A DNA stretch of 41,389 bases from Penicillus capitatus. Lineage: Eukaryota; Plantae; Chlorophyta. Below are positions 1,018 to 40,624 of the stretch, one piece after another. Below the pieces are notes generated by a model that worked only from the letters and a program-made list of their open reading frames with translations, was not told where the DNA came from and ran no database searches. The stretch is from the NCBI GenBank assembly GCA_965649825.1, contig OZ287694.1, positions 2,327,413 to 2,368,801 on the forward strand. The letters are read 5' to 3'. A program made the translations under genes and the position numbers. The number at the start of each line of letters is the position of its first letter. Positions within the stretch are counted from its first letter, which is position 1.

Positions 1018-1971
1018 ATGAAGGTTACCGAGCATTTTAAGCGAGCAAAAGATCAAACATTAGTATCATTCGAGGTACTCCCCCCGTTGAAAGGAGGAAG
1101 TATGCAGAATATCTTTGATGCATTGGATCCACTGATGGAGTTCAAACCCCCATTCATTGATGTCACTTATCATCGTGAAGAGTTTGTTTATAATATGAAA
1201 GAAAGTGGATATTATGAAAAAACGGCAATCAGAAAAAGACCTGGTACAGTAGGGATTTGTGCATCTATTATGCATCGTTATGGAGTAGATGCGATTCCTC
1301 ACCTTATATGTGGAGGATTTACATTGGAAGAAACAGAAAACGCTCTTATTGACCTGAATTTTCTAGGCATCGATAATGTACTTGCACTCCGTGGAGATGC
1401 GCGCCAATTTGAAAGTAAATTCACACCAGAAAAAGGTGGTCATAAATACGCCAAGGATTTAATAAAACAAATAGACAGCATGAACAATGGCATCTATTTG
1501 GATTCCAATATTGAAAATGGAGCAAACACTGATTTTTGTATTGGAGTTGCTGGCTACCCAGAAAAACATTTTGAAGCTCCAAATCTTAATATGGACATCG
1601 AGTATACCCGTCAAAAGATAGAAGCAGGTGGAGACTACATTGTTACTCAAATGTTTTTTGACAATCAACATTATTTCAAGTATGTCGAAGAGTGCAGAAA
1701 AGCGGGAATCACAGTGCCGATTGTTCCAGGCCTCAAACCACTTACTAGAAAGTATCAATTGAATTCAATCCCTAGAAAATTCTTTGTGAATATGCCCGAA
1801 GAATTTGTCAAGGAAGTTGAAAAAGCAAGCGGCGATCAAATTAAAGAAGTGGGAATCGAATGGTGCATTCATCAATCCAAAGAATTAAAAGAAGCAGGTG
1901 TACCTTGTCTTCATTATTATACTATGGGAGATTCGATCACTACAAAAAAGATCATAGAAGGCTTCGCGTAA
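1018..1971 (+). CDS. metF: 5,10-methylenetetrahydrofolate reductase
   Basis: SFEVLPP, FIDVTY, PHLICGG, LALRGD, GVAGYPEKH, KIEAGGDYIVTQMFFD, LHYYTM motifs; full length 317 aa. Confidence 0.97.
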   Translation: MKVTEHFKRAKDQTLVSFEVLPPLKGGSMQNIFDALDPLMEFKPPFIDVTYHREEFVYNMKESGYYEKTAIRKRPGTVGICASIMHRYGVDAIPHLICGGFTLEETENALIDLNFLGIDNVLALRGDARQFESKFTPEKGGHKYAKDLIKQIDSMNNGIYLDSNIENGANTDFCIGVAGYPEKHFEAPNLNMDIEYTRQKIEAGGDYIVTQMFFDNQHYFKYVEECRKAGITVPIVPGLKPLTRKYQLNSIPRKFFVNMPEEFVKEVEKASGDQIKEVGIEWCIHQSKELKEAGVPCLHYYTMGDSITTKKIIEGFA

Positions 1972-9650: not shown

Positions 9651-10110
9651 AAAATAGCCTAGATGGTGATCCGGAGCGACCTTTCAACGGCCGGATCAAC
9701 TCGCTAGAGCGTTCCGCGTCGACTGTTACTGGATTGTGATCGATACCTGTGTCGAGATAATTCTTAGATGTCCTCGACACAGATTAGCAAACGTAGATGG
9801 GTCGTGCTGCGACATCCACCCAGTCCTAAACACTTCAAAAACGAGAACGTAAAGGAAAATCAGAGCGTCAAAAGTGTGAGGATTAATTAGGATTGGATGG
9901 ACGCTTATGAGCGTGTTATCCTTGTAATGTAAGTCACACAGTAAGCGTCACATCCGCAGAACGCATGGACTGCAAGTCTTGAAGCTTTTGGCGAACTTTG
10001 TCGACATTCACGACCTCGTCGTCCTTGATTGGCCATACGATAATCACACTTCCTGATGTAACCTCAGTCTGCATTGAATGTATCACACTCATCGCATTCA
10101 CTATGGATAG

Positions 10111-10263
10111 TGTCGTGCGCGCGGCGCGCTGCGCCGGGCGCCGTCGGCGCGCATGCGGATGCGAGGCGGCTGGAGAAACGGTGGGCGAACGCGGATTAAT
10201 GATTAATTCTATGTCTTTGATTCTGCAGACTAGTCTCTGACTTGCCGTCGTTTCAGTCCATCA
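10111..10263. mobile_element. 153-bp solo-LTR-like insertion (TG...CA) with 5-bp target-site duplication
   Basis: GATAG at 10106-10110 and 10264-10268. The insert starts TGTCG and ends CATCA. It is absent from the homologous ~50-nt intron of copy A. Confidence 0.7.
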
Positions 10264-11517
10264 GATAGACATGAACACACTTCTTTGATTGTCTTCTGAA
10301 ATTTGCGGATCCGCGTAATGCGATCCTCGGGATGCATACAGAAGAAGGAGCATTCGATGTCTCTCATTCCTTCATCCAGTGAACAGATGTCACCGAAGCA
10401 AACGGAATGCAGACTGGAATCTTCAACCACTTCGACACTGCCAAGGTAAGTCATTTTCTTCGTCCGAGGATCCATAAAGATGCAGAACAGAAGAATCCAA
10501 TCTTGTGGTCTTCGTGTGCATCGCCAGTCGTCGAGTGGCGTGTAGAAGACAATCGTATGTGTCTTGTACACACTTTCTTCCACACTCAATTCACACAAAC
10601 GAAAATCGAGTTCTTCGAATGCCTCTATACGCACTGCTTTCGAAACGACTCCATTTCGCCTTGCGTACAGTAACCACAGGGATGGGTAGCATCCAAGATA
10701 TTCCGCGTCTCTATCGATCTGCAGACGTCCAAGATGTGTTACCTCATGAAAATCTATTGGACACGCATACCATCTTCTTCACATTGTATAGCCGTGTTCT
10801 CGGAGAGCAGATGTAAACATAGCTGCTGGGAGTGGCATAGACGTTTGTCGAGCTCTCCGTCTCTACACGTTTTCTTATGTCCCCGTCGTTAAGCACTCTG
10901 ATCCCGACTCTCGGGTCCAACAAATTAAGGCCATTATAGTGTCTCCGAACTTCTTCGTCCGGCGACCCAAAGGTCACTGGCATCGTCATGACATACGGAT
11001 CTGTGATAATCGAAAAACACAGTCCTATCTTTAACCAGCCATCGCGCATGAAAGACTTCACATCCGTCTTCTTTGTTTGCCGAAGTCCACAGGAATCAAG
11101 ATTCATGGACCCATCTTCTGGACAATACTTGTCTTCTGCAAACACACGCCAGTCGAGAAGGTACTCTACTTCGTCGCGCTATCTCGCAGAATCAGCATCT
11201 CATTGTCTCGCGTTTCTTTTTCGTTATGGCCATTGGCTGAACGGCAACTAAAAGTAGGCTCACCTATCTTGCAGCTCAGCTCTGGAGAGGCCTGGTCGAT
11301 GAGGACCATCCGGCACTTGAATTTAGGATAGTCTTTGTCCTTCGTCAAGAATGTGACGCGAAATCCGAACGCGTCCTCCCCAGTCGAGCAATGCATGTAG
11401 ATATCCCTGAACGGCAGCAGGTCGCCTTCTCCAATTCTCATAAAGAATGACGAAAAGCGTACCATGACCGTGTTTCGAGGTAACTCATTCCTTCCGTCCA
11501 GAACAGCGATTCGTCTA

Positions 11518-12550
11518 TACCTTTTCCATCCCAATTTCAATAAAAGTAAGAACGTATTCAAAACAGAAAAATGGTTTTCAAAAAGTACAGAATCATTTTG
11601 AAACCCAATATTTTACTTTCACAAATGACGACTCCATTTTCAATCTCCATGACAACGATTTCCCATCCGGTAACATCAAATTGAAACTATAATTTCTCAT
11701 TTCAAAACAAGTCATTTCATTTAAAAAATATGTCGTTGGTTTACAAAAGATATCCATTCATTTTCAATGAACATTATCTCATCTTCAAAAAAGATTAAAG
11801 CAATTATAAAAATAAACTCAATTCTGTGTCCCGTCAATGGAGCTTGCAGACGTTCCAATCTGTTACATCTTCAACGTTCCAATTGGACAAGGGATTCTTC
11901 GCCCCCTTTGGAGCGTTCTCGACACGAGTACTTCGGCAACAAGTGAGTGGCGTTTGTCCCTTGGTGTTTCTTTACTTTGTTTTAGGTATGAATGAAGAAA
12001 CAACTCCATAGCCTCGAAGAAGAGGGACTAAGCCAGGATCAAAACGCGGAGTTTACAAAAAGACTCGACGTTCAGCTCGCCTCAGGGTGGTAGAAGAAGC
12101 GAGGCAAGGTAGGGACTGGAAGGACATGGCTTCCAAGAATGGCATTCCATATTCAACTGCAAGAGGATGGGTGGCAAAGAATTGTTTTGAATTGTTTTTG
12201 CTTTTTTTTGGAGTCAGTCTCATAGGTGTGATGTCACTCTTGACATCTTGAGACCGATTTCAAATCGCTTTGGCAGTAATTGAAAAAGGGTTGACAGCAA
12301 ATTAAATTGAAGTAACAGTTGATGTAATTTGTCGACAGATTTTCAAAATGAACGGTTCGCTCTTTAAAAAAGATGACGTTCTTCTAAAATGAAATCATTT
12401 TATTTGAATTCGGACATGGAGTATTTGAAAATGAATTCATTGGATTCAGAGCTGAAATTTAGTTTTTCAAATTGATAATACGCATATTGAATTTGATTTT
12501 TTCGTTTTGAATACGTTCTTACTTTTATTGAAATTGGGATGGAAAAGGTA
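11518..12550 (+). mobile_element. Non-autonomous Tc1/mariner (IS630-Tc1) DNA transposon, 1033 bp
   Basis: Perfect 47-bp TIRs (11518-11564 / 12504-12550) and TA duplication (11516-17, 12551-52). Removing the element plus one TA restores the same 21-nt spacing (TCCGT...TTGCGGC) seen in copy A. Confidence 0.92.
11837..12185 (+). pseudogene. 5' remnant of a spliced Tc1-like transposase (HTH region)
   Basis: ATG at 11837 and GTGAGT...TTTAG intron 11943-11985 that preserves frame. Premature TAG at 12009-12011, then YKKTRRSARLRVVEEARQGRDWKDMASKNGIPYSTARGWVAK (HTH-like), then deletion. Confidence 0.65.
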
Positions 12551-14680
12551 TAGTTGCGGCTTCACCCACCACTGTCGCGTGACCGAGATTCTGAAGACAC
12601 GTGTACTGGCTTGATGGGGACCGCACCACATAACAGTTCTCGTTTTCATAGCGATGGCTGATTGTGAGTTCTTTGTCCGTCTCACACAGTCGCACACGAT
12701 ACTCAAACAAGAAGGTCTTGCTATGAAGTGGCAACACGATTTTCTGGCGAACTCCATAAGTGAAACTTTGTTCCAGCGCGTAACATGTACCTGGACAGAA
12801 ATACAGGAATGGGATGGAGGCTTCCAGATAAGGAGAAAACCGGTAATGAAAACGGGTTTCGTCATCAACCAGCGACATTTCAGCGATCTGACTTTGTAGA
12901 CATGACTGCACAGGCGCCATTCTATATCGATTCTCCTGTTCGCTTCGACCTTCACACATGCCTTCCTGCACGTCACATCCAAAGTCAACAGTGGTATGTG
13001 ACGTGTCACTGTTCGACTTACCAATCGCATCCCAGGAAAGAAACCTCCTCCACACTGAATTCCTCTCCGGGGCATTCGAGAACGTAATTGTTTATCTGGA
13101 CCTGTTGCAGTTGGGATGAAAGCGACGTTGTCGAAGCCGACAATGATACGGCACACCGTAATGGCGGCCTGGTTTTCAGACTCTTTGGTAACTTGCAGTA
13201 CGTATGGGATGTTTCTCCCACGCTGGTTCCAAACGCCGTTGTCTTCAAGAAGCGCGTGTCAGTATTAACCAAATGTGTAAAGACGTTTCGAGCGACGTAC
13301 GTGTCGAGGTGGCCATCCGTTTCCAGAAGAAAACGAAGAGCTTGAGAAAGAGCGGTTTTTGAAACGTCTGTAAAGCACCGAGATGCGCGTGATGACGTGG
13401 CAAGAAATTCGTCATTTCAAAAGGACGAGGGGACATTTTCACAAAGACATCGCCTCCAGTCGCGTTCTTGACGATCCCCGAACGTGCCCGAATGCAATCT
13501 GTCAAGGGACGAACCAATTCGAAAAGCTTCCCGTCTTTGTGGCTGACTATCCTTCTGGTCGCGAATACGTATCGAGTGCGTGCACCATGGCCACATCTCA
13601 CTGGATGCGACACTTGCTACGGTTCAATTTGTTGGTTTTGCCGAATGTCCGGAGTCAGTTTACCCGCATACGAGTGTCCAGGAAGCGCTGCAGTGACCGA
13701 CGACAGAGACAGTCATCAAGTTGTTTCAGAAAAACGCGCTGTGGAGACTCAATTTGTACCTTGAAGAAGAGGACAGTCACTGTGTCGGACGACGCTACTC
13801 GTTCGTGCAAGTGTGTTTCTTCGCACCGACTGTCTCATTGCAGAGCTTTACTGTCCTAAGTGTCGTCATGGGCGGTCACATCAGATACGAGACAGATCGC
13901 TGCAAGGACGCGATGAGCTGGCTCCCGACGCCACTCTTTTATTGTCCCTTTTCCTGTCTTCCGCCGTGAACAGTGATACGGCGGATTTCTTGATACGAGC
14001 GAAAAAAACGTGAACGTGTTAAAAGGACTGGAGTCTGATACAAAAACCCCAATTTATATGCCAATCTGCACGACGCGCACCTCACGTCATGCTAACGTCG
14101 TGGGACGCCTTGCTGGCTGCTTGATGTAACTTTACTTTTCCTTCCTTCCCTTCAGTTCCATCACAACAGATTAGACGGTTCGGATCCTCGTCTCCTCGTC
14201 GAGACATCGCTGCGACAGTCGGTTTGCCGAAAACTGCACTTTCTTGTTGTTGTTGTCTTTTCTTTTCTGCTTTTAAAATTTTGCTCGTGATCTCAGCCAT
14301 TTCCAGTAAGATTACGTCTGAGACTCGAGCATGCATTTGATAGAGTGACAGCAGTTCAACCGTGTCTGTATGTCAGTCAATCAGTCCATAGTGGGTAGGG
14401 GCATAGCGACAAGTGCACGGCAGCAGTCTGAAGAGCGACTCGCTGTTCAGCAAAATTACTTCCTTTTGAGTAGTGCTCGCCAGTGTAACGCCGACGACGA
14501 ATGAAATAATGAGCACTTAAGGACGTCGGTCAGGCAGAATCTTTTGCCCTTACGATCTTGTTGAAAAAAAAACGCTGTCTCCGGCGAGTGGAAGCGAAGA
14601 CCGAAACAGCCGCATGCATGAGTGGTGCTAACGAATCGAGACGAACGCGACTACTCGTCGCATTCAATTTCTTTACCACA

Positions 14681-21025: not shown

Positions 21026-21266
21026 TTAGAAAATCTTGGAAACAAATCCAGTGCATGGCTCTAAACAGATCGGACATCGACGACGACCTTCTCTGTACAA
21101 TCTCCTCGCGCATTCCTCACACGCACAAATGTGGACCCTACACATGACCACCCAATGACATCACTCAAGTGATCAATACACGCTGGACGGACGTCTCGCC
21201 GTGGTAGAATCCCGATGTCTGTGGGTTTTCCAGACAGACAACGCACGTTGTGTTCGGGTCATTGAA
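21026..21266 (-). CDS. C2H2C4 (MDM2-like) RING domain exons of copy D
   Basis: GT-AG introns 21267-21325 and 21138-21192 give FNDPNTTCVVCLENPQTSGFYHGETVHICACEECARRLYREGRRRCPICLEPCTGFVSKIF*. All eight metal ligands are present. Confidence 0.88.
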
Positions 21267-23470
21267 CTGAATCGCACACGCATGGAGTGCAGACAGTACG
21301 ATTTACGAGAGAGAACTGGTTGTACGTGGCCATCATGACGGTGTGACTCGCGTGACGCGTGGTGACGCGAATGCTCTTGGCGAACGGCTTGAAGCTCTCG
21401 GAGAACGTCATCAACCGTGACAACTTCATTCTCGGCCAACGGTCGTAGCAAGACAGTGCTTCCAGACACCAAACCAAACTACGTGCATTTGGCGTCAGAT
21501 CTCGGCCACTCTTACACAAAGTACCTCTCTCGCTGTCTTCTGAAAAGCGCGGATCTGTTTTGCGTGGTTCTCGACGTCCACGATGAAGAAAGCGCACTCC
21601 ATGTCTTGCAGTTTATCGCACAGACGGTACAGGTCGTCGAAGCAGATGGAATGGAGTTTTGTATTCGCATCTGCCACGATGCTCCCACAGTACTCCACTC
21701 TGTGCTCTCGAGGATTCAAGAACATACAAAACAGCAACACCATAGAAGGCGGCGAGCATCGCACTAGCTGATCCTCTTCGCTGGTATGCTTGTAGAGCGT
21801 GACGACACGACAATTGTCGATATCTCTCTGTTCAGATAGCTCACACAGACGGAAATCGAGTTCCTCTAATGTGTCCAGAAGAACGGCTCTGGAAAAGACC
21901 CCGTTCTTCTTTCCGCATAGCAGCCAGAATGTCGTCTGGCGTGGATCCCATCTCAGCTGTTTCTGTATCTGCACCATTTCGCCATGATCTGGATCTCTGT
22001 TACTTAAGTGTACCTTCCGTTTGACCGTCTTCAGCGACTCGTGTGGTGGGAAGAGGTTGAGTTGGCTGCCCGATACGTCGAAGAGATGGACGGATCCAAA
22101 GTTTCGAACGTGGTTTTGGATGTGACTGTCCGCGATGGATACGATCACGACACGTGTTTCGAGCTGATGGAACGTATCTGCCAATCCAGACGTTGATCCG
22201 ATAAACGAAAGGCGTATTCCAAACTTCAACCAGCCGTCCAGGGCAAAGGAAGGACAGTCATTGCTCTCTCCATACGGCTCCGGAAGATCGAAAACAAACG
22301 GAATCGTCCTCTCTTGCGATCCTTGATGCTCTGCAAACAACACAACACTTCTATCGACACTATTCCCCATCTCTCCATAGAATGGTGCGAAGGCCGATCT
22401 CTCGTGGTTGAGTAAATTGCTGCTATCGATTGGATATGCTGCTCACTTTGAATAGAGCTCAGTTCCGGAAAGGATTGGTCGATAAGGACGGCTTTACTCT
22501 CGAGCAACTGGCATTCGGTGCTGGACAGATCCATGACTTCGAGCTTCATACGCCCGTGACCACCTGCGTTGTACAGAAAGAGACCCCTGAACAGCAGAAC
22601 CTTTTCTCGGAAATCCATCACAAGCGACAGTAGACCAGATCTTCCCACGGGAGAGAAATCTGCCAGCCCAGAAGAATGCCTCTCTTGAATATGGCTTCAA
22701 TCGCCACTGAACACCATCCGCCATCGAGATCTCACTTACTTCGCATTTCCTTACCACGCAATACGTTTCTGTCTGTCCTTCATGTACGTTGAGTTCCTCT
22801 TCGTCTGACGCGTACAGTTGCATGAGGAACGAGGCCACAAAGAATCCGCTCGAATTGGGCTGAGCTTCTGCAAAGGTGCCACCGTAGAGGCCGTTCTGCT
22901 GAAGAAGCGTCGATGGTCCTGTCACAGCGAAATGGGGACATACACGGACGGGTATTAACACTCGATCTGCCTGACCAGGAATGCGGACAGGTTTTATCAT
23001 CATCCAACAACAACGAAGGGGCGTTTCTGTGATGACCGAACTCCGCAAACGCCAGAGCGCCTCGACGCTTCCGTTCTCCTTGGCCGTCACACATGCTGAC
23101 CTGCACGTCACATTAACATCCTTGTCACAGTGTGCGTGCGTGCGTGCGTGCGAGATCTCGTTTGTCGAACCAGTCGTATCCCAAAGCTGAAAGCGTTTTT
23201 GTCACGAGCTGCTCTCCAGGCCTTCTTAAGAGGCTCTCGTGTACATAGACCTGCGTCGATGTGAATAGCTGACGGATCGTGAGGGGACGGGAGGGAGTCT
23301 ACGAAGAAACAGCTGGTTCGACCAAAAACGACGTGTGCGCCCTCTGCGTACGGAACGCCGTTGCACTCGCCGCGCTCTCCAACAAGAGCAACTCATTGAC
23401 ATTCATGGAACCGTGTGCGTCTTGTTGCGCACGACTGACTCACCATACGCCAACGCCATCTCTGTAGACG
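21026..23470 (-). CDS. MATH-repeat + USP7-type UBL + MDM2-type RING gene, copy D (candidate E3 ligase; intactness unresolved)
   Basis: FALDGWLKFGIRL, VVIVSIADSHIQNHV, LLFCMFLNPREHRVEYCGSIV. Terminal exons 21193-21266 and 21026-21137 splice into a RING. 5' boundary approximate. Confidence 0.75.
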
Positions 23471-23899: not shown

Positions 23900-24140
23900 A
23901 TGTGTCGCCGGGCGATGTGACTCTGTCTTGTTTCTGAGGGTCCATGTTTCAGGGGGGTGCTGGTTGAATCATCCGAGGCCCTTTTCTCTGGTTCTGGTGC
24001 TAGGATGATTCACCTACCGAGTCACGTCGCGTCACCATGGGACTATATAATGCACAATCTGACCTTTGTTTCACCTTCTCCGAACACTGTAACAAGTCTT
24101 CCGCTGTGAATCGTTTGGTGCGGCACTTCCGCGCGACATC
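23900..24140 (-). repeat. Triplicated Cys-rich exon/intron relic (with 25120-25345 and ~28800-29045) of the multi-TM receptor-like family
   Basis: Near-identical CACAATCTGA...GTTTCACCTTCTCCGAACACTGTAACAAGTCTTCCGCTGTGAATCGTTTGGTGCGG at ~24052 and ~25261, with a diverged copy at ~28957. The minus strand has GT...AG intron-like borders. Confidence 0.65.
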
Positions 24141-24394
24141 ATGGACAGAAAAGCCTTTCTGGTACGCTAACTGTCGGGATCGCTGTAACGATGCGCTTCA
24201 CACGAATCGGCTCTCAGCGCGAACGACGACGTGAACGCACGCTCAGACCGCGAACACAGGAATACGAGTTAATTAAATGATACTGTCGCGTTTAAGTACT
24301 CGCGGTAATTGGGGATTCCCTAACCTCAAGAGCAACAGCTGTGAACTCCTGCCCACGTTCAACAACCATCAGTCTACCGTTATTGCAACAGCAG

Positions 24395-25110: not shown

Positions 25111-26379
25111 GATGTGACACTGCCTTGTTCTGTGAGGGTCAACCGTGCGAGGGGGTGCTGCCTGTCTTGTCAACTGCGTCTTGGGACGCCTTTCTCTGGC
25201 CCTGAACACGAGCTGACTCACCATTCTAGAAGGGTTACGTCAGCAGGCGACTATATAATGCACAATCTGAGCCTTGTTTCACCTTCTCCGAACACTGTAA
25301 CAAGTCTTCCGCTGTGAATCGTTTGGTGCGGCGCTTCCGCGGTGACAGTGTTACGGGCTTGTGTCGCAATGCGGCAGTGGGCATTCGGATCCGTCCAATC
25401 ATCCAGATGCCACTTCCGGTGTCTGAATCACGCCACATTCCTTCCCAAACGATGGGTTTTTTCCTTTTGATGAATCGGCAGTGTGTCTTTTGTTTTTACA
25501 TCGCACATGAACGCCTGCTAAATGAATCGCAAGCGTCCGAAAAGGTCTGCTGTTGGGAATTGGGTATCTTGTTGTTTTTCATATTGTTCCTTTGACTGGC
25601 AATCAAAGTGCCGACAGTTTTTGCCAAACCCTTCAAATGACTGACGAACCACAGCAAAGTCTTGACCTTGTCGATCGTCAGTGAGAAAGTAATGGGTGAA
25701 TGGTACGAACGAAGAATTATTGCATGACAGCATCGGACTTACGAGAATTCGCTGTCGGCATTCACACTCGTCAAGAAATAAACGAGTGGTTCGAAGAGAC
25801 CGACCTCTCAGTCGCAACAAAGAGCAGTGAACAAAGGAATCCGTCCACATAAATGTTCCGTCGATTTTGAGATTTGTATGGCATTTTGGGAAACCTGAGT
25901 CCTAAACAGCTTCTTTTTGTTGAACGTGTGATTTCGAAACCAAAAAAGTTCTGTGTCCGTTTGCAGGAACCGAGAGCAATCCGGTTGTTTTGATGGCAAT
26001 GTTGCCATTGTCGGTGTATGATGAACGTCCTTTATTTGAAGTTCGATGATACGTACTGCGATGAATCAATCAATCCTCTATCGACGACGCCCAGTCTGCG
26101 AAGATGCTGACATGGTGCACTGAAGTGCGTCCAGCTGCAGATCAGTCATCACAACATTGTCACCATTCAAAAGTGAAGAGGCACAGCCGTGGACATTTGA
26201 TTGCCATTCAAACACTCTGTGCTATCCTCCATCTACAGAATCAATGATCATCGCCAATAAGGAAAGCCCCACAAAGATGAAGACTTACTGTCTGGCTCGT
26301 ATCAGCGTGAAATAGCGACTGTTTGACGCTGTCGTCGTTGTCTGTTCAGTGGAACGCTCATGTGGACTGTATTCAGCCA

Positions 26380-28724
26380 TCGATGGGTAGCTGTCGTTTG
26401 CCATCTGGCCGTTCTAACGTACGACAGAACGCGTCAACTCAGCGACAGCGACAAGTTCATTTGCTTTTGCGGACGCGATTCGTACAGTGTCGCGTTTGTG
26501 ACTTCAAGAAGCTTTGCAAAACCGTCCTGCCTCACACTCTTTGTTTCCTCGTGGACACGGATGGGAATTTCGCAGCGTAAGTCGCCCAAACATTTCGCCT
26601 TTTCGAACAATGCCGAAACGTGTGCCTCGAAGACGACGGTGTTCTGAGTTATAGCCCCAATCGCGGGGAGGACTTGGAAATCAGATACGCCTTGAACAGC
26701 ATCGAGGAGTCTGAAAACCAAGGCGTCCTCACGGTATGTCTTATTACGTGGTTGTCGTAAACATCGCGTTCGCCTCTACTGTGACAGGTCCATTTGGTCG
26801 GGGTAAAAAACAATCTTGTGAGAAGATGTGAAAGGGTATGCGAAACAGATAAGATCTCTTTCCTGGGATACGACTGGCACGACCACGTTAGAGACGTCTC
26901 AACACTCCTGAGGCTTTTGTGTGACACACAGGACTGTCTGTCTGACTGTCGACTCTCATTACGAGACCTATGTATCCTGGCACTTGCGAAGTTCAGTCCG
27001 CGGTGGACGGTCGCAGAGAGGCTACTGGACCATACAGAAACCTCATTTTATTCCGGGTTTCTTTCCTGTTCGAGATGCCTCTAACTAATTCGTTGAATTT
27101 CGTTTAGCGCCATTCACCACGTTTCAGCAGAATGGTTACTATGGGCATTTCCATACAGACACACAGACGGTTTTTAAGCACGGCCTACTTATTGAGAACC
27201 GTGTGCTGTTAAATCAAGAAGAGGAAGAGGAACTCGCATTTCATCACAGCACATGCGATCTCAACTATGTGGTACGGTCCCGTCGAAGCAGCAGAAAAGT
27301 TTTTCGCAATCGCAGTCGTGTTTGCAGTGGTGGTTGAAACCGCAATCGGAGGAACAGGTCTTTCGAACGACTACACTCGAATCTCCTTTTTCTGATGCTC
27401 AATGGTACTTATTGATATTCGCCTTCTGTTGTACGAAGGCTAAAGAAACTGCTTACTATCGCCTTTTCAGGAAAATCTATGTGTACTGCTCATTTGGAGA
27501 AGACAGTGAGTTGGGGTTTCGTATCGAGAATGATCATGCATGCAGCTCTAACTCGATGGAATGTCGGATTCTCCTTATCGAGCAATCTTCTCCTGAGTTG
27601 AGTTATAAGATGGGTAAGTATACGTACGTCTAATTGCTGTCCAATCAAACAAAGTGAAGAATCAAATCTGTACGCGAAGAAGCGAAACGTGCATTTTGGA
27701 TATGGAACTGCAGAGCAATGGGTCGTTCGTAACAAATGTGTGTTTGTAGAGGATCGAAGACTAGACAAGGGACCTGGTTCAGATCCTGTCTTTCAATTCG
27801 AAGGATCCGGACAAATAGATTTAAACTCCTTCATGCTCGATGGATGGTTGAAGCTTGGACTGCGTCTTTCGCGTGTGAGGTCCGACGAATACGTAAAGGA
27901 CGAATACTTTTCGAAAGTGCCACAAGTCAGGATCCAAGTGCTCAAAGACCATCATATAAGAAAGAACGTCGCGTCAAATGCCTCGACGGATGTCTTCTGC
28001 ATTCCCATCGGTTGTATTTTCTTCTGTCCTCCCAACAGATCGCTGAAGGCCGTGAAAAACATGGTATGCTCTAAGCAACTTACAATGGATACAGAAGATC
28101 CTGGACAATTTTTAGATTCAGAAAGATGCTCAACTGGATTCATCTGAATCGATAGTTTGGCTTCTTAACGCAAAGAGAGATGGTTCTTTCTCGAAGGCAG
28201 TGTGTGTGGACGCATTGGAGGAACTCGACTTTCGTCTTTTAGAGTTAAGTGTGGACGGAAAGGAGAGTGCAGAGCGTACAGTTACTTTCTACTTTCGACC
28301 GACAGGCAAGCTTCTCGATGCAAATCGTCCACAAGACAGCGTCCTTCTCTTCTGCATCTTTATGGATCCGCGAAAAAAGAAGATGAAATACCTTGGGAGC
28401 GTTGTCGTCGATGAAGATGCCGGACTCTATTCCGTCTGCTTCGGCGACATCTGCTCACTGGATGAAAGAATGACACATACAGAATGTTGCTTTTTCTGTG
28501 TGGATCCCGAGGATCGCATCTCACAGATCCGTATATTCCAGAAGACACTTAAACAAGTGCGTCTCTGTCCTTAGTGGGATGAGTGGGAACATTCAATGCA
28601 GAGTGAGGTGATATCTGGAAGTGTGTTCGTCGTGAGGCCAGTAGTGGACAACGAGGTTGTGAGTGTTGCTAAAGTTCGGGGAGAACTGCAAGAATTGCGC
28701 GCCGATCGTCATGGCCAGGCGTGA
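26380..28724 (+). CDS. MATH-repeat + USP7-type UBL family gene, copy E (inverted; possibly pseudogenised)
   Basis: CLQWWLKPQ...AQWYLL, FMLDGWLKLGLRL, IQVLKDHHIRKNV and LLFCIFMDPRKKKMKYLGSVVV. Very similar to copy A including its 3' flank. 5' boundary approximate. Confidence 0.75.
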
Positions 28725-30229: not shown

Positions 30230-30925
30230 TCGTCTTCGGCTTGCCTAGTCTTGGTCTTCTGCCTTCACCTTCTTGGTCACTTGCTTGGTCTTCTGCCTTG
30301 CTTGGTCTTGGTCTTCTTCTTCGGCTTACCTTGTCGCCTTCGCCTTGTGCCTGGTCTTGCTTGGTCATCTTCTTATCTGGGGTTGCTTGGTCTTTGGTCT
30401 GGTCTTTGGTCTTCGGCTTGCTTCGCCTTGTGCCTTATTGGTCGCCTTCGCCTTCGCCTTCGCCTTCGCCTTGGTGCTTGGTGCTTGGTCGCCTTCGCCT
30501 TCGCCTTGGTGCTTGGTCTTGGTCTTGGTCTTGGTCGCCTTCGCCTTCGCCTTGGTGCTTGGTCTTGGTCGCCTTCGCCTGGTTGCTTAGTCTTCGCCTT
30601 CGCCTGGTTGCTTAGTCTTCGCCTTCGCCTTCGCCTGGTTGGTCGCCTTCGCCTTGTGCCTTATTGGTCGCCTTCGCCTTGTGCCTTATTGGTCGCCTTC
30701 GCCTTGTGCCTTATTGGTCGCCTTCGCCTTGTGCCTTATTGGTCGCCTTCGCCTTGTGCCTTATTGGTCGCCTTCGCCTTGTGCCTTATTGGTCGCCTTC
30801 GCCTTGTGCCTTATTGGTCGCCTTCGCCTTGTGCCTTATTGGTCGCCTTCGCCTTGTGCCTTATTGGTCGCCTTCGCCTTGTGCCCTCTGCCTTGTGCCT
30901 GGTCTTGCCTGGTCTTGGTCTTCGC
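30230..30925. repeat. Strand-biased hierarchical satellite built from 5-6 nt modules, with a homogenised 25-bp core array
   Basis: Modules TTCGCC, TTGGTC, TTGTGC, TTGGTG. Perfect GGTCGCCTTCGCCTTGTGCCTTATT x9 plus a 20-nt partial copy at 30641-30885. Confidence 0.95.
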
Positions 30926-31119: not shown

Positions 31120-31890
31120 TCACCTACTTGACCTCCTTTGGGATCCCTTAGATGAACTCCCGGCGCTTTTCTCGTTCGTCCGTTTTTCCTGCTCTGCTTT
31201 CAACCTCGCCATCCGCGCTTCGTGCTCCGCTCTCAACCTCGCCATCCGTTCTTCTCTGACCCGCGTTCTTCGAAGACTGTAGCGGAGCGTTGCCTCACTC
31301 GTCCTCGTCAACTCCTCTTCGTAAGACACGCCCCGTCTACGGCTTCTAGAACCGCGGCCCCTAGAAGCGGCGTCCACATCCGGCTCGGCCTGATCCGCGG
31401 CGTCCACCTCCGGCTCGGCCCGATCCGCGGCGTCCGCCGTGAACTCGAGCATGAAATCGACGAACCTTGTTGCCAGTGCGCGACTTCGTGCATGGACACT
31501 TTCCACGGTCACCCTGAGCTCTGACCACAAGTACCATGCAAACATCGCGATCCTGAAGGCCGTCGCATCGTTGTCGAATTGTGCGCCCAAGGTAGTCACC
31601 AAAGACCGCCTCAAATCTCTCGCGAAGTCGGCCCACGTGTGGGTCAGCACTCTCCTGCCTCTGATGTACGTAGAGTACATACGCTCTGGAGCCACTTCGC
31701 GGTAGATGCGCTCGACGTCGACAAGGTTTCCGCCCGTCTCGCCGCGCGCGACCGACCTTAGCAAACTGCTAATGTAGATCGCATAGACGGTGAAGAAGAT
31801 CGTGAACCTTTCAAGCTCGATTACCGCTCGGCCCAAAACGCGCATGGCCCAGGCCGTTAAAATACGAGCAGCATTTTCAAACGAACGCAT
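31120..31890 (-). CDS. Intronless orphan protein (helical N-domain, DAADxAEPxV repeats, basic/coiled-coil C-terminus)
   Basis: Open frame with first ATG at 31890. A 30-nt repeat at 31369-31435 keeps frame, and EERMARLRAEHEARMARLKAEQEKR looks like a coiled coil. No family recognised. Confidence 0.6.
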   Translation of the reverse strand: MRSFENAARILTAWAMRVLGRAVIELERFTIFFTVYAIYISSLLRSVARGETGGNLVDVERIYREVAPERMYSTYIRGRRVLTHTWADFARDLRRSLVTTLGAQFDNDATAFRIAMFAWYLWSELRVTVESVHARSRALATRFVDFMLEFTADAADRAEPEVDAADQAEPDVDAASRGRGSRSRRRGVSYEEELTRTSEATLRYSLRRTRVREERMARLRAEHEARMARLKAEQEKRTNEKSAGSSSKGSQRRSSR

Positions 31891-32999: not shown

Positions 33000-33847
33000 A
33001 CAGAGTCACCTTATCTCTCGGCCCTTGGCTTCTGGCGAGAAGGCGAACGACGGAGCGTGGACGCTTCGGACCTTTTCCAACGGGGTGCAGAGCAGGTGGT
33101 GCACAACACCGAGCTGTACGAGTCCAGACGAAACTCCTCCCACGAAGAAAGAGTTGAGAACCAGAACGGAGCGGGCCCATCTACTCACCTGAACGGAGCG
33201 ACTCAGCAAGTTCCTCCTCGGGTGGTCAACGAGCCTACGACTAGTGTCACGCGAGCATCTTCCCCAGACCGACAACGCCTTCGTCGTATTCGCATCGTTC
33301 GTCGGCGACAACTGCGATGTGACCTCCATCTGTCGATCGCGCCGTTAACGGCCTGATGGACGTTTAATTGCATAGAATGGCATGCGGCCGAGTTAGTTAG
33401 TTGGTCAGGTCGTTCATCCGACGAAGAAGGAAATTCTCAAGCCAAAATGGACGTCGCCAGGGACGTGTTGCACGAGATCTCGTGAAGACTGCCATTTTAC
33501 ACGAGACGTGCACGAAGCCTTCGTTTTCCCGGGAGTTCTCTTCGGGGGATAACAGGAGTCAAAGCAGACAACATCATCCCCGTCACAACCGGCAAAGAAC
33601 GAACGCACACTCGGGATGGTGGAGCCTTCGGGAAACCAATGCAGCGGAAGGACATGTGCTGGGAGAACGGCTGATTAACGATGCCGAAAGAGCTCTGACA
33701 TTCCACTGCTGCGAGTAGTACTCGAAGCAGTCCCTTCAAGTGACAACGACCTGATAGCGCACGAGCTGCACACGAACAGAACGGAACTCAAGCCAAAGGA
33801 ATCGTGGAACTCGAAGAAGACCAGCCAGAAAGACTTCAAACAACCGC
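33000..33847 (-). pseudogene. Possible degenerate TM-region remnants of the receptor-like gene interrupted at 40625
   Basis: Hydrophobic stretches in several frames (e.g. ARSVLVLNSFFVGGVSSGLVQLGVVHHLL) with multiple stops; no clean frame. Confidence 0.3.
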
Positions 33848-34151
33848 TGTCGCGTAGGTTTTTGGATGGAAACAATTTTAAAGGTGGGCGCACGTAGACC
33901 TGTGAAACGTAAAGTCTTACAAACGAAAGACAAGTTCTGTACATCTACAACGCTTTTATAGGGTACTTTATTTTAAGTAACAAAAAGGAATATTCTGCAA
34001 AGATCCGGAATCTACTTGGAATCTGTGACGTAGAGCCGCGGGTCTATTTGTGGATGGGAAGGTATAGAGAACCTACGACCTGTCACCTGGAGATCGACAC
34101 AAGTGTAGGTAGATGAGCGCATTATCGCGAGCGCTACGCCTTAACACGACA
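33848..34151 (-). repeat. 3' LTR
   Basis: Base-by-base match to 40321-40624. Confidence 0.97.
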
Positions 34152-34155
34152 TGGG

Positions 34156-34173
34156 CCCACCTATCTTCTGTCT
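34156..34173 (-). promoter_or_regulatory. Polypurine tract overlapping the pol stop codon
   Basis: AGACAGAAGATAGGTGGG, 4 nt upstream of the 3' LTR on the minus strand. Confidence 0.6.
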
Positions 34174-37157
34174 AATCTCCGAAGGAAGTCACGATGGACA
34201 TTGTGCAGCGTCGAACCATTGGGCATACGGATATCCCACCGGTGGTCACTATGTTCTTTCACTACCACACAAGGATAGACCCATTTGGAGTATAGTTTGG
34301 AGTCGAGGCGGTCGGCCAACTTCGAGTTGTACCACGAGACCTCGGCTCCCACTTCAATGGGACGGATCTTAACTTTCTTGTGGTGCCTTGTCTTATTTTG
34401 CTGGTGTGCCTTAATTATTCGTTGATAAGCTAGTCCTCGGTCGGTGTCCAGCTGTGGTGGACTAGTTATCGTGCCGTTCCGTTGTGTGCCAGTTAGAAGG
34501 TATTGTGGACAGAACAGAGTCGTACTATGAATCGTTCGGTTGATCTCATGCACGCTCGTGCTCACATGTGTCGTCCAATCACCCCCCTTTTCCGCCCATA
34601 TCCTCCGAAGTCGATTTACGAGGTTTCGGTTGAACGCCTCGACAGTGCCTGCACTTTTGTGGGAATAGGTTGGGGTGTGTAGCAGATCAATTCCGTGCTG
34701 TGCGCAGGTACTCTCGAAGCTCCTGGCAATGAAGGCGCTTCCGTTGTCGCACAGGATCCTCTGTGGAGCCCCAAAGTTTCGTGCCCATTCGAGTACCAGC
34801 TTAATAGCCTGTGCTGCCGAGCACGTCTTACATGGGCGCCCCATGCCAAACTTAGTGAAAGCGTCGATCCCGGTAGCGATATACCGAAACCCGTGGCTGC
34901 CACGGTTCAGCGGTCCTATGAAGTCTAGACACAGTGTGTGGTTCGGGGATGGACTGTCAATCATACCCAAGTCCACCTCAGATCGTGGGTTGCGAAACAT
35001 TTGGCACGTCTCGCAGTTATTGACGTAATCTCGCACGTCATTGAAGTCGTTCGTCCAGCGGGTACCGTCGGACCGCAGGTTCAGGAATGTCTTCTTGACC
35101 CCGAAGTGGCCTGCATGCGCCTTCTTGATGAGCTCGGTCCGTTCTTCCGGAGTATAGGATACGGAGTTCACTTGATATCCCTGTTGCTTCTTCTTGGTGT
35201 GAAATTCGACAGGTGCGTTGTCTCTCCATCGGCTGAGAAGATCCGCTATCACGTTGTCCTTCCCCTCTACAAAACAGAAGTGGAGACGATCATGGGAAAA
35301 GTGGTGCCGGAGCCAGCAATGCTGTCTCTGGATCCGGAGGTCCTTGAACTTGTGCAGGAATGTCGGCTCCTTGAGCCAATTGACCGTCGCCATGTTGTCG
35401 GAGTAAACGAATACCTCCGTCTGCTTGATCACAAAGTAACATTCCTTCAAGGCCCGTACTATTCCCATCAGTTCTCCCAGAAAGCTTCCGACCCTCTGTT
35501 TCGTCGTGAAGGAGCCAAAGAGAACAGGTTGCAAGGTCGAGTTAAGCAATACGTATCCGAACTGGTTGAGTGGGTTACCACACCAATCCGTATACAGATG
35601 GAATGGCCCCCTTCTTTCCAACGTCAGTCGGTACGTACTGATGCATAGAGATTGAACTGCGTCCTTGTAGATCTCGTCAGCTTTGGTGTAGTCATTGTGT
35701 TCGCGCTTCAGGAATGGCTTGAGTTGCGTGACGATCGCGTCGTATTTGTAACAGTACTGTGCCAGTTGCTGGCACAGACCCATGGCCTTCTGAACGTCGT
35801 GACGTGATGTGATTGTCGGCAGCTTCTGGAGTATGGCCTGGGCCCTGTGGTAGGGGTTTAGCGTCCCGGCACTGAGCTCAGTACCCAGAAAGCTCACCGA
35901 AGTCTCAAACCAGTCACACTTTTGGCAGTTGATCGTCAAGCCATATTCGTCGAAACGTTTCAATAAAAGCTTGGTCTTGTCGAGGAGTTCCTCCTCGGTT
36001 TCGCCGCCGATCAATATGTCATCGAAGTATCGTATCACATCCAACCCCTGCAGGATGTGGGTCATGCGGTTATTGAAAAGCTCCGGACTGACGTTGACGC
36101 CTTGTGGCAGTCTTCGAAAGCCGTACGTCACGCCGTTCCAATGTAGTGCAAAGAAAAGCGAAATATTGTCGTCGATGGGGATGGAGCCGTAGCCGTGAAC
36201 AATGTCCACGATGGTGTATACGGTCCACTTGGGATCCACCTTCTGGATGATGTTCGACACCGGAATGATGGTCCCCCCTTGCGTTCCTTCGAGGTACGTG
36301 TTGATGTCGCGGAAGTCAATGGTGGGCCGGATCTTGCCATTCGGTTTGCGTATAAAGTTCAAAGGTGCTACGACGGCGTGTATTGCCTCGGCAACAGACA
36401 ACGGTCGTATGACACCCTCCTTGTTTAGCGAATCGATCTCTTTTGAGATCTCTTCGTTGGTGAGACCCGAGACGTAGTTCTCCCTCCAGCATGGCTTAGG
36501 CTCGCCCATCCAACAAAGATCCCTGTTGCGTACCCTGATGTCCCACAGCCTGCTGGTCGTCGGGCGAATGGTGTCCGAAAAGACCAGGGGAAATTCTTGT
36601 CTTAGCCGAGCCACTATCGCATCCTTGTCGATTGGTGTAGTGATGCTCATGATATTGACACGTTTGGTCTTTATTCGCAGCGGGTACTCTGTCCCATCAA
36701 CATCGACGATGGATTCCACGTCACCCTTGGCACAGCACAATCGCATCTTGCTGGTGATATGCTGTGGAACATCGGATTGGTTGAAGATTACCACGCTGAT
36801 CTGACCATTCGTGTGTACCTTGACCTTGCAGAAAATGTTTTTATTGTGGGTGCAGTCAAAGAATGCAGTCCAGGTTGTTGTTTCCGAGAACTTGAAAGGT
36901 AAGATGATACGGCGACTCCGAAAGGGTCCTAACACAAAACTTCTCCCTGCCATGAAGACGATCCAGCCGTTTTGCTTGAATGGGAATAGCTCCCGGTCAA
37001 TGGATTCTGTGACTTGGAGTGGTGAAGGTGTTAGTCTTTCTTCTTGTCTATTTGGCGGTGTCTCGTCGTTCCAGTTCGATTTCACTAGTACCAGGCGTTT
37101 CACGTGCGGCTTCTGTTGTGCGTCATGCGCCTGCTGAAAAACAGGCTGGTCCCTCAG
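34161..37157 (-). CDS. pol: Pol (-1 frame): degenerate dUTPase-like domain, RT, RNase H, integrase
   Basis: RT: RKPNGKIRPTIDFRDIN, RLPQG, YFDD at 36018-36029. RNase H: LYTDW, ELMG, YSDN. Integrase: HAGH...CETC, LDFIGP, CDNGSAF, VEAFN. The frame is open upstream to the slippery site (KKLRDQPVFQQAHDAQQKPHVKRLVL). Confidence 0.95.
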   Translation of the reverse strand: MRDQPVFQQAHDAQQKPHVKRLVLVKSNWNDETPPNRQEERLTPSPLQVTESIDRELFPFKQNGWIVFMAGRSFVLGPFRSRRIILPFKFSETTTWTAFFDCTHNKNIFCKVKVHTNGQISVVIFNQSDVPQHITSKMRLCCAKGDVESIVDVDGTEYPLRIKTKRVNIMSITTPIDKDAIVARLRQEFPLVFSDTIRPTTSRLWDIRVRNRDLCWMGEPKPCWRENYVSGLTNEEISKEIDSLNKEGVIRPLSVAEAIHAVVAPLNFIRKPNGKIRPTIDFRDINTYLEGTQGGTIIPVSNIIQKVDPKWTVYTIVDIVHGYGSIPIDDNISLFFALHWNGVTYGFRRLPQGVNVSPELFNNRMTHILQGLDVIRYFDDILIGGETEEELLDKTKLLLKRFDEYGLTINCQKCDWFETSVSFLGTELSAGTLNPYHRAQAILQKLPTITSRHDVQKAMGLCQQLAQYCYKYDAIVTQLKPFLKREHNDYTKADEIYKDAVQSLCISTYRLTLERRGPFHLYTDWCGNPLNQFGYVLLNSTLQPVLFGSFTTKQRVGSFLGELMGIVRALKECYFVIKQTEVFVYSDNMATVNWLKEPTFLHKFKDLRIQRQHCWLRHHFSHDRLHFCFVEGKDNVIADLLSRWRDNAPVEFHTKKKQQGYQVNSVSYTPEERTELIKKAHAGHFGVKKTFLNLRSDGTRWTNDFNDVRDYVNNCETCQMFRNPRSEVDLGMIDSPSPNHTLCLDFIGPLNRGSHGFRYIATGIDAFTKFGMGRPCKTCSAAQAIKLVLEWARNFGAPQRILCDNGSAFIARSFESTCAQHGIDLLHTPTYSHKSAGTVEAFNRNLVNRLRRIWAEKGGDWTTHVSTSVHEINRTIHSTTLFCPQYLLTGTQRNGTITSPPQLDTDRGLAYQRIIKAHQQNKTRHHKKVKIRPIEVGAEVSWYNSKLADRLDSKLYSKWVYPCVVVKEHSDHRWDIRMPNGSTLHNVHRDFLRRLDRR

Positions 37158-37163
37158 TTTTTT
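37098..37163 (-). promoter_or_regulatory. Predicted -1 programmed ribosomal frameshift signal
   Basis: A AAA AAC heptamer (37163-37157) directly before the ORF1 TGA; -1 frame continuous with pol; downstream GCCTG/CAGGC hairpin at 37129-37146. Confidence 0.8.
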
Positions 37164-40100
37164 GAAACAGAAACGTTGTGGATGAGTATTTTGTTACCTT
37201 TGTCGTCATAGACTGCATCCTCCTCGCAGTTGAGCTGCAACTTGAATGCCTGAAGGGCCTGCATTCCCAGAATCGGGCGTTGGACACCTTCACAGACGAC
37301 AAATGGTATCTCGGCGCTCTGTTTCCCGAGGGTGCACAACAAAGAGATCTCGCCACTCGTCTTGGTCGTCTTGTTGTTAAAGCTAATCACGTCCCGAACT
37401 TTCGACGACCTTAGGACCAAGTTGTGTTTCCTCGCCAGCTTCGCTGGAAGGACATTCGTTTGCGCACCGGTATCCAGCAGGCAAGAGATCTTTCCGGCAA
37501 TGTCCTCCATGCTGAGTGGGACATTGTACTGTAACATCCTTCGAGACTCTTGGCGCTGTACCGGATTCGTCTGTGCCACGGTCCTTGATTCTGGTGCCTT
37601 TGGAGTTTTCGTGACCGTGGGGCAGTCCTTCCAGGAGTGGCCTTTCTGACCGCATCTTTCGCATGTGTGCCCGACGTCTTGACGCATGTTCTTCCGGCCA
37701 TCCGCCCTGGCGTGTCCTCGACTGTTCTGTTCCTGTTCCAGACACTCGTCGATGATCAGTTGCACACGCGGCCAATTCTCTGCATTTCCCCACGGCAACC
37801 CACGCAGGCGTGACTGGATGTGTGCATTCGCGATGTTGAAGATCCGCTCAGTCGCTGTAGCGTACTTGAGTGGGTCTTGTACCAACTCAAGTAGCTTCGA
37901 CATTCTTCGTGCGAACTGAGACAGATTCTCCTTTCGTTTGGGCAACAGCGTGTGCACGTCCTTCATGGAGGGTCCCTTCTCGTTGTGTCTTGTGGGTGCG
38001 TGACTCACTGGTGTGCGTGGGGTTGCGGCATCCTTTTCCTGACGCTTTTGTCCCTCTTGCTGTCGTCGCGTGGCCTTTTGAACGTCGGGTGACAATTCAG
38101 GGTGATGCTGCTCACAGCTAACCTGCTGAATTCGTGTCCGATCCTCGACTGCTTCTAATCGCTGTCCGATACTGGTAAAGCTCGCTTCAAGACTTGTCTC
38201 CATTCTCCCTTGTCTATTGACAAGTCTCCTTTCGAGGTCTTCGGCGCGTCTCATGAGCTCCTCTTGCATTGCCTGTATACCTTCCATCAGGGATTGTATT
38301 AAGCCTCCTTGTTCAGTGTCTCGACGGGTCTCTGATAACGGATCTGGGTGGATTTCAGTCACTATATTCTGTTGGTTTGCCCGTCGTGGCGACTGCTGAG
38401 CCGGCGGAGGCGGTGGCGACTGCTGAGCCGGCGGAGGCGGTGGCGACTGCTGAGCCGGCGGAGGCGGTGGCGACTGCTGAGCCGACTCCTGGGTGGTCTG
38501 TTCTTGAGTCGGTTGTTGCGCCTGAGCCCCTTGTCCCCGCATCAGATTCCACACGATTCTGAGTAGCCAGCAAATCCCCTGGGTTATGGCTACGATTCGC
38601 ATCACAACCTTGCGGATGTTCCTGAATACATTCAAAATCCACGCGGCGACGTTGTATAGAAGCATAGCAGCGCCTACCAACTGCCAGCCGTTCCCCGTAG
38701 CCAGGGCGCTACGAATTGCTTTGATTCCAAATTTATCCCATAGTGTGCCTAACACCCATGTAACTGCGTTATCACGGGTACCGGTTAGCCATTTTATAGA
38801 GCGGTCGTGGAATGTATCATTCCCGTGACTGCTCTCCCAACCGTTAGCCTGGCTTTCGCAGATGCAATCGTCTAGAGCCGTCTTCATGTTGCCTGTGTGT
38901 TCGTTGATCTTGTTTATTGTCTCGCGGATATTATTGAGAGTGTCATTGAGGTGCTGCCAATCGACATTAGAACTCTTAGCATGTGACTCTTGTGACGTTT
39001 CAGGTCCTTGGTTGTCTGTCGACGAACCATTTACCGTGATGTTCAGGAACTGGGTGATGCCGTCCAAGGTCTCTGCGACGTGTCGCACTTCTCCTACGAG
39101 AGAGGACTTCCTAGATGGGAAGTTGTTGATGATCGAGACTGTCGCAGTCGTCAACAAACTCGCTGGGGAGAATACGGACAACACACCTCTGTTTGTCGCC
39201 CAGTTGACGATCCCATGAGCAGTAAGACCTACGACAGCACTAGTGATCATTGCGTCAATATAGTCTGGCCAAGTGATGTCGATTCCCATTCTGAAGTCGG
39301 GGATCATGTACCAAGATTGCCCATCTTCGACAGGTAGAGCATCTCCCATCTCGTGCAAATTGAAGACATTTTCTGGAGGGAGTTCTTGTTCTGTCCATTG
39401 GTCTTCGGACTCTTCGGACTCTTCGGACTCTTCGGACTCTTCGGACTGTTCGGGATCGGATCGCGGAGCCTCCTCGTCGAATAGATCTTCCGCCAATTCT
39501 ACCGGAATCTCGTATTCGTCATACTCGAGCTTGTAAGCTTCCGCGCTGGGTTCCGAATCCATCGGCAAGTCCGTATTAGTTTGTACGTCTTCATGTTCTG
39601 CGACGGGGATAGCGAACTCAAAACGCCTGCGGAGGGCTCTGGCTGAGCCGGCTATGGTGCGTCTGTCTTCTTCGGCATTTGTGTCTGTACACACGAGGTC
39701 ATATATCTTCTGTCTAGATGCGTCCAGCACCGCTTTTGGTTCCCACGTCTGTGAATGAGGATTGCCCGGGATTAGTAGGAAGAAGGACATTCCTGTAGCC
39801 AGAATCGGCTTTCCTCCCCAATGTATCAAGGAACCCTCGCCGAGAAGCATGATCAGCATATTGGCTTCCTCGTACGTAATGCCTTCGCTTGCGTCATAGA
39901 AGATGATGCCGTTAGGGCACTTTTTGACGAAGACCGCGATCTCCCTTTGAATTATTCTAGCCTCATTCACAGATTTGGATTGCGGTTTAATATACTTGAA
40001 ACAACTGCTCTTTTGCAGACTAGGCTCATTCTTGATTCCGTTAACCAGTGAGTCGCATGTACTTGTCGTACAGTAGAGAACTGTAGACGTCGCTTTATCG

Positions 40101-40321: not shown

Positions 40322-40624
40322 GTCGCGTAGGTTTTTGGATGGAAACAATTTTAAAGGTGGGCGCACGTAGACCTGTGAAACGTAAAGTCTTACAAACGAA
40401 AGACAAGTTCTGTACATCTACAACGCTTTTATAGGGTACTTTATTTTAAGTAACAAAAAGGAATATTCTGCAAAGATCCGGAATCTACTTGGAATCTGTG
40501 ACGTAGAGCCGCGGGTCTATTTGTGGATGGGAAGGTATAGAGAACCTACGACCTGTCACCTGGAGATCGACACAAGTGTAGGTAGATGAGCGCATTATCG
40601 CGAGCGCTACGCCTTAACACGACA
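40321..40624 (-). repeat. 5' LTR with TATA box
   Basis: Matches 33848-34151; TATAAAA on the minus strand at 40427-40433. Confidence 0.97.

Follow-up and report, generated by a model that had tools for sequence, protein, structure and literature searches.

The DNA analyzed here, hereafter called the window, comprises 41,389 nucleotides (nt) of contig OZ287694.1 of the chlorophyte Penicillus capitatus (assembly GCA_965649825.1, positions 2,327,413 to 2,368,801 of the forward strand) and harbors five related genes, termed copies A to E. One of them, copy D, carries at its 3′ end two short exons which together encode a complete RING domain. The same split RING was found, under purifying selection, in four further genes of the family, and the large exon upstream is predicted to fold into a pair of ubiquitin-like (UBL) domains of the type present in USP7. 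It is likely that copy D is an 11-exon gene whose product combines N-terminal modules, a USP7-type UBL1-UBL2 unit, a linker and an MDM2-type RING, and that it serves as a RING E3 ubiquitin ligase or as a partner subunit. RING E3 ligases themselves are known, but the combination of USP7-type UBL1-2 with a C-terminal RING very probably constitutes a new domain architecture.

Gene model and RING domain of copy D

The exons and introns of copy D are compiled in Table 1. In the deduced protein of ~618 amino acids, about 290 residues of N-terminal modules are followed by UBL1-UBL2, a His/Arg-rich linker of ~25 residues and the C-terminal RING. All ten introns of the hand-built model are of the GT-AG type and 46-74 nt long, so the two introns in front of and within the RING are typical for this gene. 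Exon 9 closes on a whole codon (...SHRHDGH), its 3′ end at 21326 reading ...RELQAVRQEHSRHHASRESHRHDGH, and the acceptor at 21267 is the sole one that keeps the frame with this exon. Between the two RING exons, 193 GT-AG excisions are possible. The annotated junction gave the best match to the RING of MDM2 (score 107), while the next best excision and the unspliced sequence reached scores of 76 and 46, respectively. The initial annotation had proposed that GT-AG introns of 59 and 55 nt join the UBL exon in frame to a RING, and translation of the minus strand reproduced motif and spacing exactly. Exon 10 cannot start a protein since a stop at 21305, 12 codons upstream, closes its frame, which does not contain an ATG. 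As the chain from the UBL tail to the RING is also kept in four other genes (see below), the RING forms the 3′ end of copy D, as had been suggested. Its reported absence from the open reading frame (ORF) track was confirmed as well: the ORF listing of the window yields at this site just a 41-amino-acid ORF with one half of the RING, and public prokaryote-style gene calls on the contig contain nothing at the RING exons.

The spliced RING exons matched the Pfam family zf-C3HC4_3 (PF13920) with 37.6 bits (E 1.9e-9, profile positions 3-47 of 49), the curated cut-off being 27 bits. Exon 11 alone stayed below this cut-off (23.5 bits, E 4.9e-5, profile positions 19-47 of 49). Within the full 618-amino-acid model, the family scored 31.9 bits and was the only one above threshold; neither a SWIB/p53-binding domain nor a RanBP2-type zinc finger was detected by this Pfam scan. 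The zinc ligands of the 61-amino-acid RING peptide (C8, C11, H22, H27, C31, C34, C46 and C49) follow the pattern C-x2-C-x10-H-x4-H-x3-C-x2-C-x11-C-x2-C and thus show cross-brace spacing. A phmmer search of all PDB chains placed MDM2 first (1.4e-8), followed by MDM4 (7e-8) and MUL1 (3.5e-4), and a profile made from five RINGs of the family gave the same rank order. The segment YHGETVHICACEEC of copy D pairs gap-free with VHGKTGHLMACFTC of MDM2, H-x4-H and the subsequent x3-C-x2-C being present, and the only gap between the first Cys and the aligned part of the tail is one residue long and located in the last loop. Behind the last Cys, copy D ends with the 12-residue tail LEPCTGFVSKIF and MDM2 with the 13-residue tail RQPIQMIVLTYFP, whose first nine residues were aligned by phmmer. 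Judged by these similarities, the RING of copy D is an MDM2-like C2H2C4 RING domain, complete and with a hydrophobic tail, which agrees with its original assignment to the MDM2/MDMX type.

Conservation of the split RING in related genes

When 1.84 billion proteins were searched exhaustively with a family profile, 42 matches were obtained, nearly all of them short ORF fragments of the copy D family; USP7 was not among them. The contigs of the fragments closest to copy D were searched by tblastn with the RING peptide. Four further genes of the family, from the ENA metagenome assemblies ERZ25074695 and ERZ26696514, were found to have a two-exon RING 50-250 nt downstream in the same orientation. 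The family is lineage-specific and orphan, and the RING-bearing form is conserved within it.

In all five RING genes, an open GT-AG path leads from the exon containing the UBL2 tail to the RING, the first RING exon begins seven codons ahead of the first Cys, and the RING intron lies in phase 2 after "ET" (55 nt in copy D, 47-49 nt in the relatives). The coding length of the RING is 186 nt in each case. The intron preceding the RING measures 51-54 nt in the relatives (alternatively 57 nt in L006b). The RING exons of the relatives are 61-72% identical to those of copy D, while the translations of the introns are unrelated; for the equivalents of exon 11 in L004-L007, protein identities to copy D of 67-83% were determined. 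Comparison of the five RINGs gave proportions of nonsynonymous and synonymous differences (pN and pS) of 0.11-0.22 and 0.42-0.90, respectively, with synonymous sites near saturation, and ratios of nonsynonymous to synonymous substitution rates (dN/dS) of 0.08-0.32. For copy D against the other RING genes, dN/dS amounted to 0.08-0.13 where computable. All eight zinc ligands are among the 27 of 61 alignment columns that show no variation. The Pro of CPxC and, in the alignment with MDM2, the Val/Ile of CxVC are likewise invariant; both are presumed E2-contact positions. The relatives possess HGET, HAET or HKET, with both His ligands unchanged, and their tails terminate in KIF, KIY or TVF.

The conservation of the split RING in five genes makes it unlikely that the motif arose by chance, is a dead remnant or represents a gene of its own. 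Moreover, since four relatives share it, the genes with a RING make up a conserved sub-group, and this form is not peculiar to copy D. The earlier statement that the RING converts copy D into something new is therefore correct for the window, where copy D is the only gene with a RING, but has to be modified in that this form is not unique. No other RING-like sequence occurs in the window. The regions behind copies A, B, C and E are free of RING remnants, as are those following the family genes in L002 and L003 (P0012 and P0006). The tail ...SGSxxxxxP...EVVxVxxxxxELQxLR is common to copies A, B, C and E, all of which end 5-25 residues past the UBL2 tail. In a tree of the UBL2 region, these four RING-less genes form a supported clade (98/95) and a second RING-less group holds P0012 and P0006, the RING-bearing genes being placed on the unresolved backbone. 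Two state changes are needed to explain the presence of the RING on this tree; a single origin of the RING-bearing genes by one state change is still conceivable.

Some further observations on the family were made. The two RING-bearing genes of L006/L007 are arranged in tandem within about 4 kb (10001-14038), and a 20-kb segment with both genes is found twice in one assembly, on contigs of 74 kb and 960 kb. Two long, repetitive sequences were the exceptions among the 42 profile matches. In P0031 (1576 amino acids), 21 stretches match the family profile in its UBL1 part. The nine matched stretches of P0040 (846 amino acids) belong to a low-complexity tandem-repeat translation and probably represent a spurious profile match. 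A word-based search with the 291-amino-acid ORF returned the self-match alone, and a scan of JGI metagenomes with the UBL2 alignment produced 548 pattern matches, none of which was confirmed.

Upstream modules, paralogs and genomic surroundings

Sequence similarity to USP7 is weak but points in one direction. To the sequence of copy D alone, UBL1-2 of USP7 in the PDB was matched with an E-value of about 0.1. With a profile of 44 family sequences, 13 of 14 PDB matches were USP7 (E 0.03-0.25). The only recurrent Pfam family was PF12436 (USP7_ICP0_bdg), detected in 14 of the 44 members with a best E-value of 4.2e-5; the score of copy D was 13.7 bits, and no member of the family reaches the cut-off of 27 bits. 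When exon 8 was modeled by AlphaFold2 with a 44-row alignment, to which the 42 family fragments had been added, a predicted local distance difference test score (pLDDT) of ~80 was obtained over residues 63-282, compared to 38.6 with the window paralogs only. A Foldseek search of the PDB with this model revealed USP7 UBL1-2/HUBL structures on all ranks from 1 to 22 (E 5.5e-9 to 1e-7, probability 1.0, target-normalised template modeling score up to 0.62) and nothing comparable thereafter. Since the model matches USP7 UBL1-2 structures exclusively, the description of the upstream exon as a USP7-type UBL holds at the level of the fold, and exon 8 is predicted to encode a USP7-type UBL1-UBL2 double beta-grasp unit.

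The N-terminal 290 residues comprise two modules. Both contain a G-x-D-W motif, behind which lies an intron in phase 2. This part of the protein closes with DGWLKxGxRLS, similar to the last strand of a MATH domain, and the putative domain is distributed over six short exons. The initial annotation had indeed assumed a MATH domain, but at the sequence level this assumption was not confirmed. The Pfam MATH family did not match copy D, P0021, P0033 or P0035, and the family profile yielded no PDB matches for the N-terminal modules. An hhalign comparison with the MATH domains of SPOP and USP7 (sequences confirmed as MATH by Pfam) gave a probability of 0.1, and Smith-Waterman alignments with shuffled controls z-values of at most 0.1. 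Nor was there a signal for the two modules being repeats of each other (z -0.8), the shared intron phase after G-x-D-W being the sole hint.

A 28-nt intron in the copy D model was rejected as implausible; comparison with copies A and B gives an intron of 49 nt in phase 2 after a Trp codon. The position of this intron is kept in copies D (22636/22586), B (~8712/8649) and A (~4383/4314), with lengths of 49-69 nt. In copy E and P0021, a post-Trp intron is stop-free and in frame and is therefore read through by ORF-based gene calls. Copy E furthermore has GC in place of the GT donor at the conserved phase-2 intron after GYDW (26857-26935, plus strand). Since the frame is not restored by any GT donor, copy E either uses a GC-AG intron at this site or is a pseudogene.

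Table 1. Positions of the family genes in the window, structure of copy D and RING-bearing relatives
Feature	Position	Strand	Basis or remark
Copy A	about 3.1-5.5 kb	minus	family paralog
Copy B	7.4-9.2 kb	minus	family paralog
Copy C	9.9-13.3 kb	minus	family paralog
Copy D (11 exons, ~618 amino acids)	23459-21026 (21.0-23.5 kb)	minus	family paralog with RING; hand-built, introns placed by paralog conservation
Exons 1-7 of copy D: ~220 residues, N-terminal modules (fold not assigned; "MATH" in the initial annotation)	22447..23459	minus	hand model, introns GT-AG, 48-74 nt
Exon 8: end of N-terminal module (DGWLKFGIRLSF), predicted USP7-type UBL1, most of UBL2	21525..22372	minus	AlphaFold2, Foldseek, Pfam
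Exon 9: last strand of UBL2 (FGLVSGSTVLLRP), EVVxVDxxxxELQxxR, His/Arg-rich linker	21326..21478	minus	conserved in A, B, C, E and relatives
Intron 9: 59 nt, GTACAA...ATTCAG	21267..21325	minus	frame-keeping acceptor 21267
Exon 10: 74 nt, FNDPNTTCVVCLENPQTSGFYHGET = FNDPNTT + CVVC-x10-HGET, first half of RING	21193..21266	minus	translation of spliced exons, Pfam
Intron 10: 55 nt, GTCCGT...GTGTAG, phase 2, splits Thr codon of HGET/VH	21138..21192	minus	best of 193 GT-AG options
Exon 11 (terminal): 112 nt, VHICACEECARRLYREGRRRCPICLEPCTGFVSKIF, VH-ICAC-EEC-x11-CPIC, 12-residue tail, TAA stop	21026..21137	minus	translation, Pfam
Copy E	26.3-28.7 kb	plus	family paralog
RING-bearing relative in L004	P0004		tblastn
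RING-bearing relative in L005	P0015		tblastn
RING-bearing relatives in L006/L007 (two)	P0007 and gene at 13152-13613		tblastn

The window represents nuclear DNA of a eukaryote and contains, in addition to the five family genes, a Nop14 gene, whose product had no PDB match, a Ty3/gypsy element and, at the left end, a bacterial-type MTHFR gene. A search of Rfam gave no match. The Ty3/gypsy retrotransposon (33700-40600, minus strand) is flanked by long terminal repeats (LTRs) at about 33913-34113 and 40386-40586 and contains frames of 1087 amino acids, with an aspartyl protease, and 980 amino acids, with reverse transcriptase, RNase H-like and integrase domains. Translations of the LTR segments are 100% identical over 67 codons, which suggests a recent insertion. 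An ORF for a flavoprotein and an MTHFR gene of 317 codons without introns are located at 250-1971 (plus strand), in a stretch with 36-40% GC, as against ~50% elsewhere in the window. Among solved structures, this MTHFR is closest to the short bacterial enzymes 1v93 and 3apt (E about 2e-41), which rank before the long enzymes of eukaryotes. This may reflect a bacterial-type gene within a eukaryotic genome, horizontal transfer or an assembly join. Tandem repeats at 30233-30885 and 31186-31435, among them a 25-nt unit repeated 13.7 times (92% matches), lie within overlapping long ORFs and are accompanied by a strong GC and AT skew at 30-32 kb. Between copies D and E, a dispersed repeat is present twice (24004-24231 and 25230-25592), with ~83% identity over 35 codons in both translation orientations.

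Proposed function and comparison with known systems

As a ligase, copy D would bind two zinc ions by its RING, which would dimerise through the tail and the flanking strand, as do the RINGs of MDM2 and the IAPs. E2-ubiquitin conjugates (E2~Ub) could be recruited via the hydrophobic positions in CxVC, ARR(L/V), i.e. its Leu/Val, and CPxC, and ubiquitin may then be transferred to the protein itself or to proteins held by UBL1-2 and the N-terminal modules. The RING-less paralogs A, B, C and E would share this recognition part. The MDM2-type tail with its penultimate aromatic/hydrophobic pair is needed for dimer activity, and by analogy the tail of copy D might have the same role. Regarding the original proposal of a candidate E3 ligase, the RING, its MDM2 type and its junction with a USP7-like UBL gene have been substantiated, and so has its role as a candidate ligase.

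Several points weigh against this interpretation. The splicing of the RING exons was inferred from the sequence, and for intron 9 two donors may be chosen, 21325 (59 nt) or 21316 (50 nt), both of which leave the frame open. Word-based database searches with the full spliced model and with the RING region did not find any relatives, hence there is no characterised relative to lean on. Within the RING, the Lys of HGKTGH in MDM2 is a Glu in copy D. A further difference concerns the Arg which follows the last Cys of MDM2 (CPVC-R) and contacts E2~Ub there. In copy D, it is replaced by Leu (CPIC-L), and the relatives have Leu, Met or Phe at this position.

Because this Arg is missing, in all five genes, the intrinsic ligase activity could be weak or absent, and a non-catalytic role similar to that of MDMX is possible. 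The RING might be a dimerisation module that pairs with a RING paralog or oligomerises the UBL1-2 scaffold. Several RING paralogs per genome, such as the tandem pair of L006/L007, the two RINGs of which lie within 3.5 kb, would allow heterodimers. MDMX is reported to be devoid of innate E3 activity though it dimerises with MDM2 (PMC8459461). On the other hand, many active RINGs lack this Arg. Additionally, the zinc ligands and the hydrophobic E2-contact positions (CxVC, ARRL/V, CPxC) are conserved and the domain is under purifying selection. On balance, we regard a purely non-catalytic RING as unlikely, albeit worth serious consideration.

It is also conceivable that the RING exons belong to another transcript, either a small separate RING gene or one using an alternative first exon inside copy D. 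L004 as well as copy a of L006/L007 possess an in-frame ATG a few codons before the first Cys. By contrast, the first RING exon of the three other genes (D, L005 and L006b) is preceded by a stop in its frame, after which no in-frame ATG follows. In all five genes, the sole frame-keeping acceptor lies seven codons before the first Cys and is reached by the open path from the UBL2 tail, and position, strand and distance have been kept across paralogs so diverged that pS rises to 0.9. Another transcript is thus very unlikely. That the RING exons are a decaying remnant, with copy D ending like its RING-less neighbours and a retained intron 9 leading to a stop after ~50 codons, would fit the lack of a RING in four of the five window paralogs and in the relatives of L002 and L003, but is extremely improbable in view of an ORF that is intact over both exons, eight of eight ligands, a length equal to that of four relatives and the low dN/dS values of copy D.

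The reading of copy D as a RING E3 ligase or partner subunit was thus retained as the probable one. The idea of an "inverted USP7", according to which clients docking on USP7-like surfaces would be degraded, is a speculative, though attractive, analogy. Its widest version, in which a C2H2C4 dimeric RING so far ascribed to the animal proteins MDM2/MDM4 exists in an unrelated, lineage-specific family and is fused there to USP7-derived recognition modules without a catalytic domain, the docking logic of USP7 being reversed and the RING-less paralogs acting as decoys or regulators, appears distinctly improbable to us.

In the literature and databases searched, there was no prior description of USP7-type UBL1-2 without the protease in combination with an MDM2-type C-terminal RING. 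The C2H2C4 arrangement is reported to be unique to Mdm2 and Mdm4 among RINGs and conserved across metazoan Mdm proteins, and this ligand set together with the tail has otherwise been regarded as a peculiarity of MDM2/MDM4 (PMC6372010). If copy D is active, the MDM2-type RING would be a portable module, older or more widespread than the p53-MDM2 axis, UBL1-2 of USP7 would be able to act as a stand-alone recognition or scaffold unit, and a multi-gene family would toggle between RING-bearing and RING-less forms. The data are also a practical warning, as a RING of this kind escapes annotation when eukaryotic metagenome contigs are annotated by ORFs: not one of the five had been called as a gene.

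Among known proteins, TRAFs and TRIM37 combine MATH and RING in ligases. Copy D resembles them solely if its N-terminal modules are MATH-like, and the RING of TRAFs and TRIM37 is N-terminal and not of the C2H2C4 type. With USP7, copy D has the predicted fold of UBL1-UBL2 in common. What separates them is a sequence identity of merely ~15% and, in copy D, the lack of UBL3-5, of a demonstrable MATH domain and of the USP catalytic domain (no UCH match in the Pfam scan of the 618-amino-acid model); the N-terminal module runs directly into UBL1. MUL1 and the IAPs, dimeric E3 ligases as well, share with copy D the Pfam family zf-C3HC4_3, the C-terminal position of the RING and a short hydrophobic tail. 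They differ in that they score ~13 bits below MDM2, and their third ligand is a Cys instead of a His. Since no other part of MDM2 is present, copy D is not a member of the MDM family, and the likeness, which does not imply orthology with MDM genes, is confined to the RING. Within this domain, however, it is extensive. Copy D and MDM2/MDM4 have the same C2H2C4 ligand set with the spacing of MDM2, apart from one extra residue in the last loop of copy D, and in copy D as in MDM2 the RING is situated at the extreme C-terminus and followed by a hydrophobic tail in which the pattern xxPxxx(I/F)Vxx(Y/I)F aligns.

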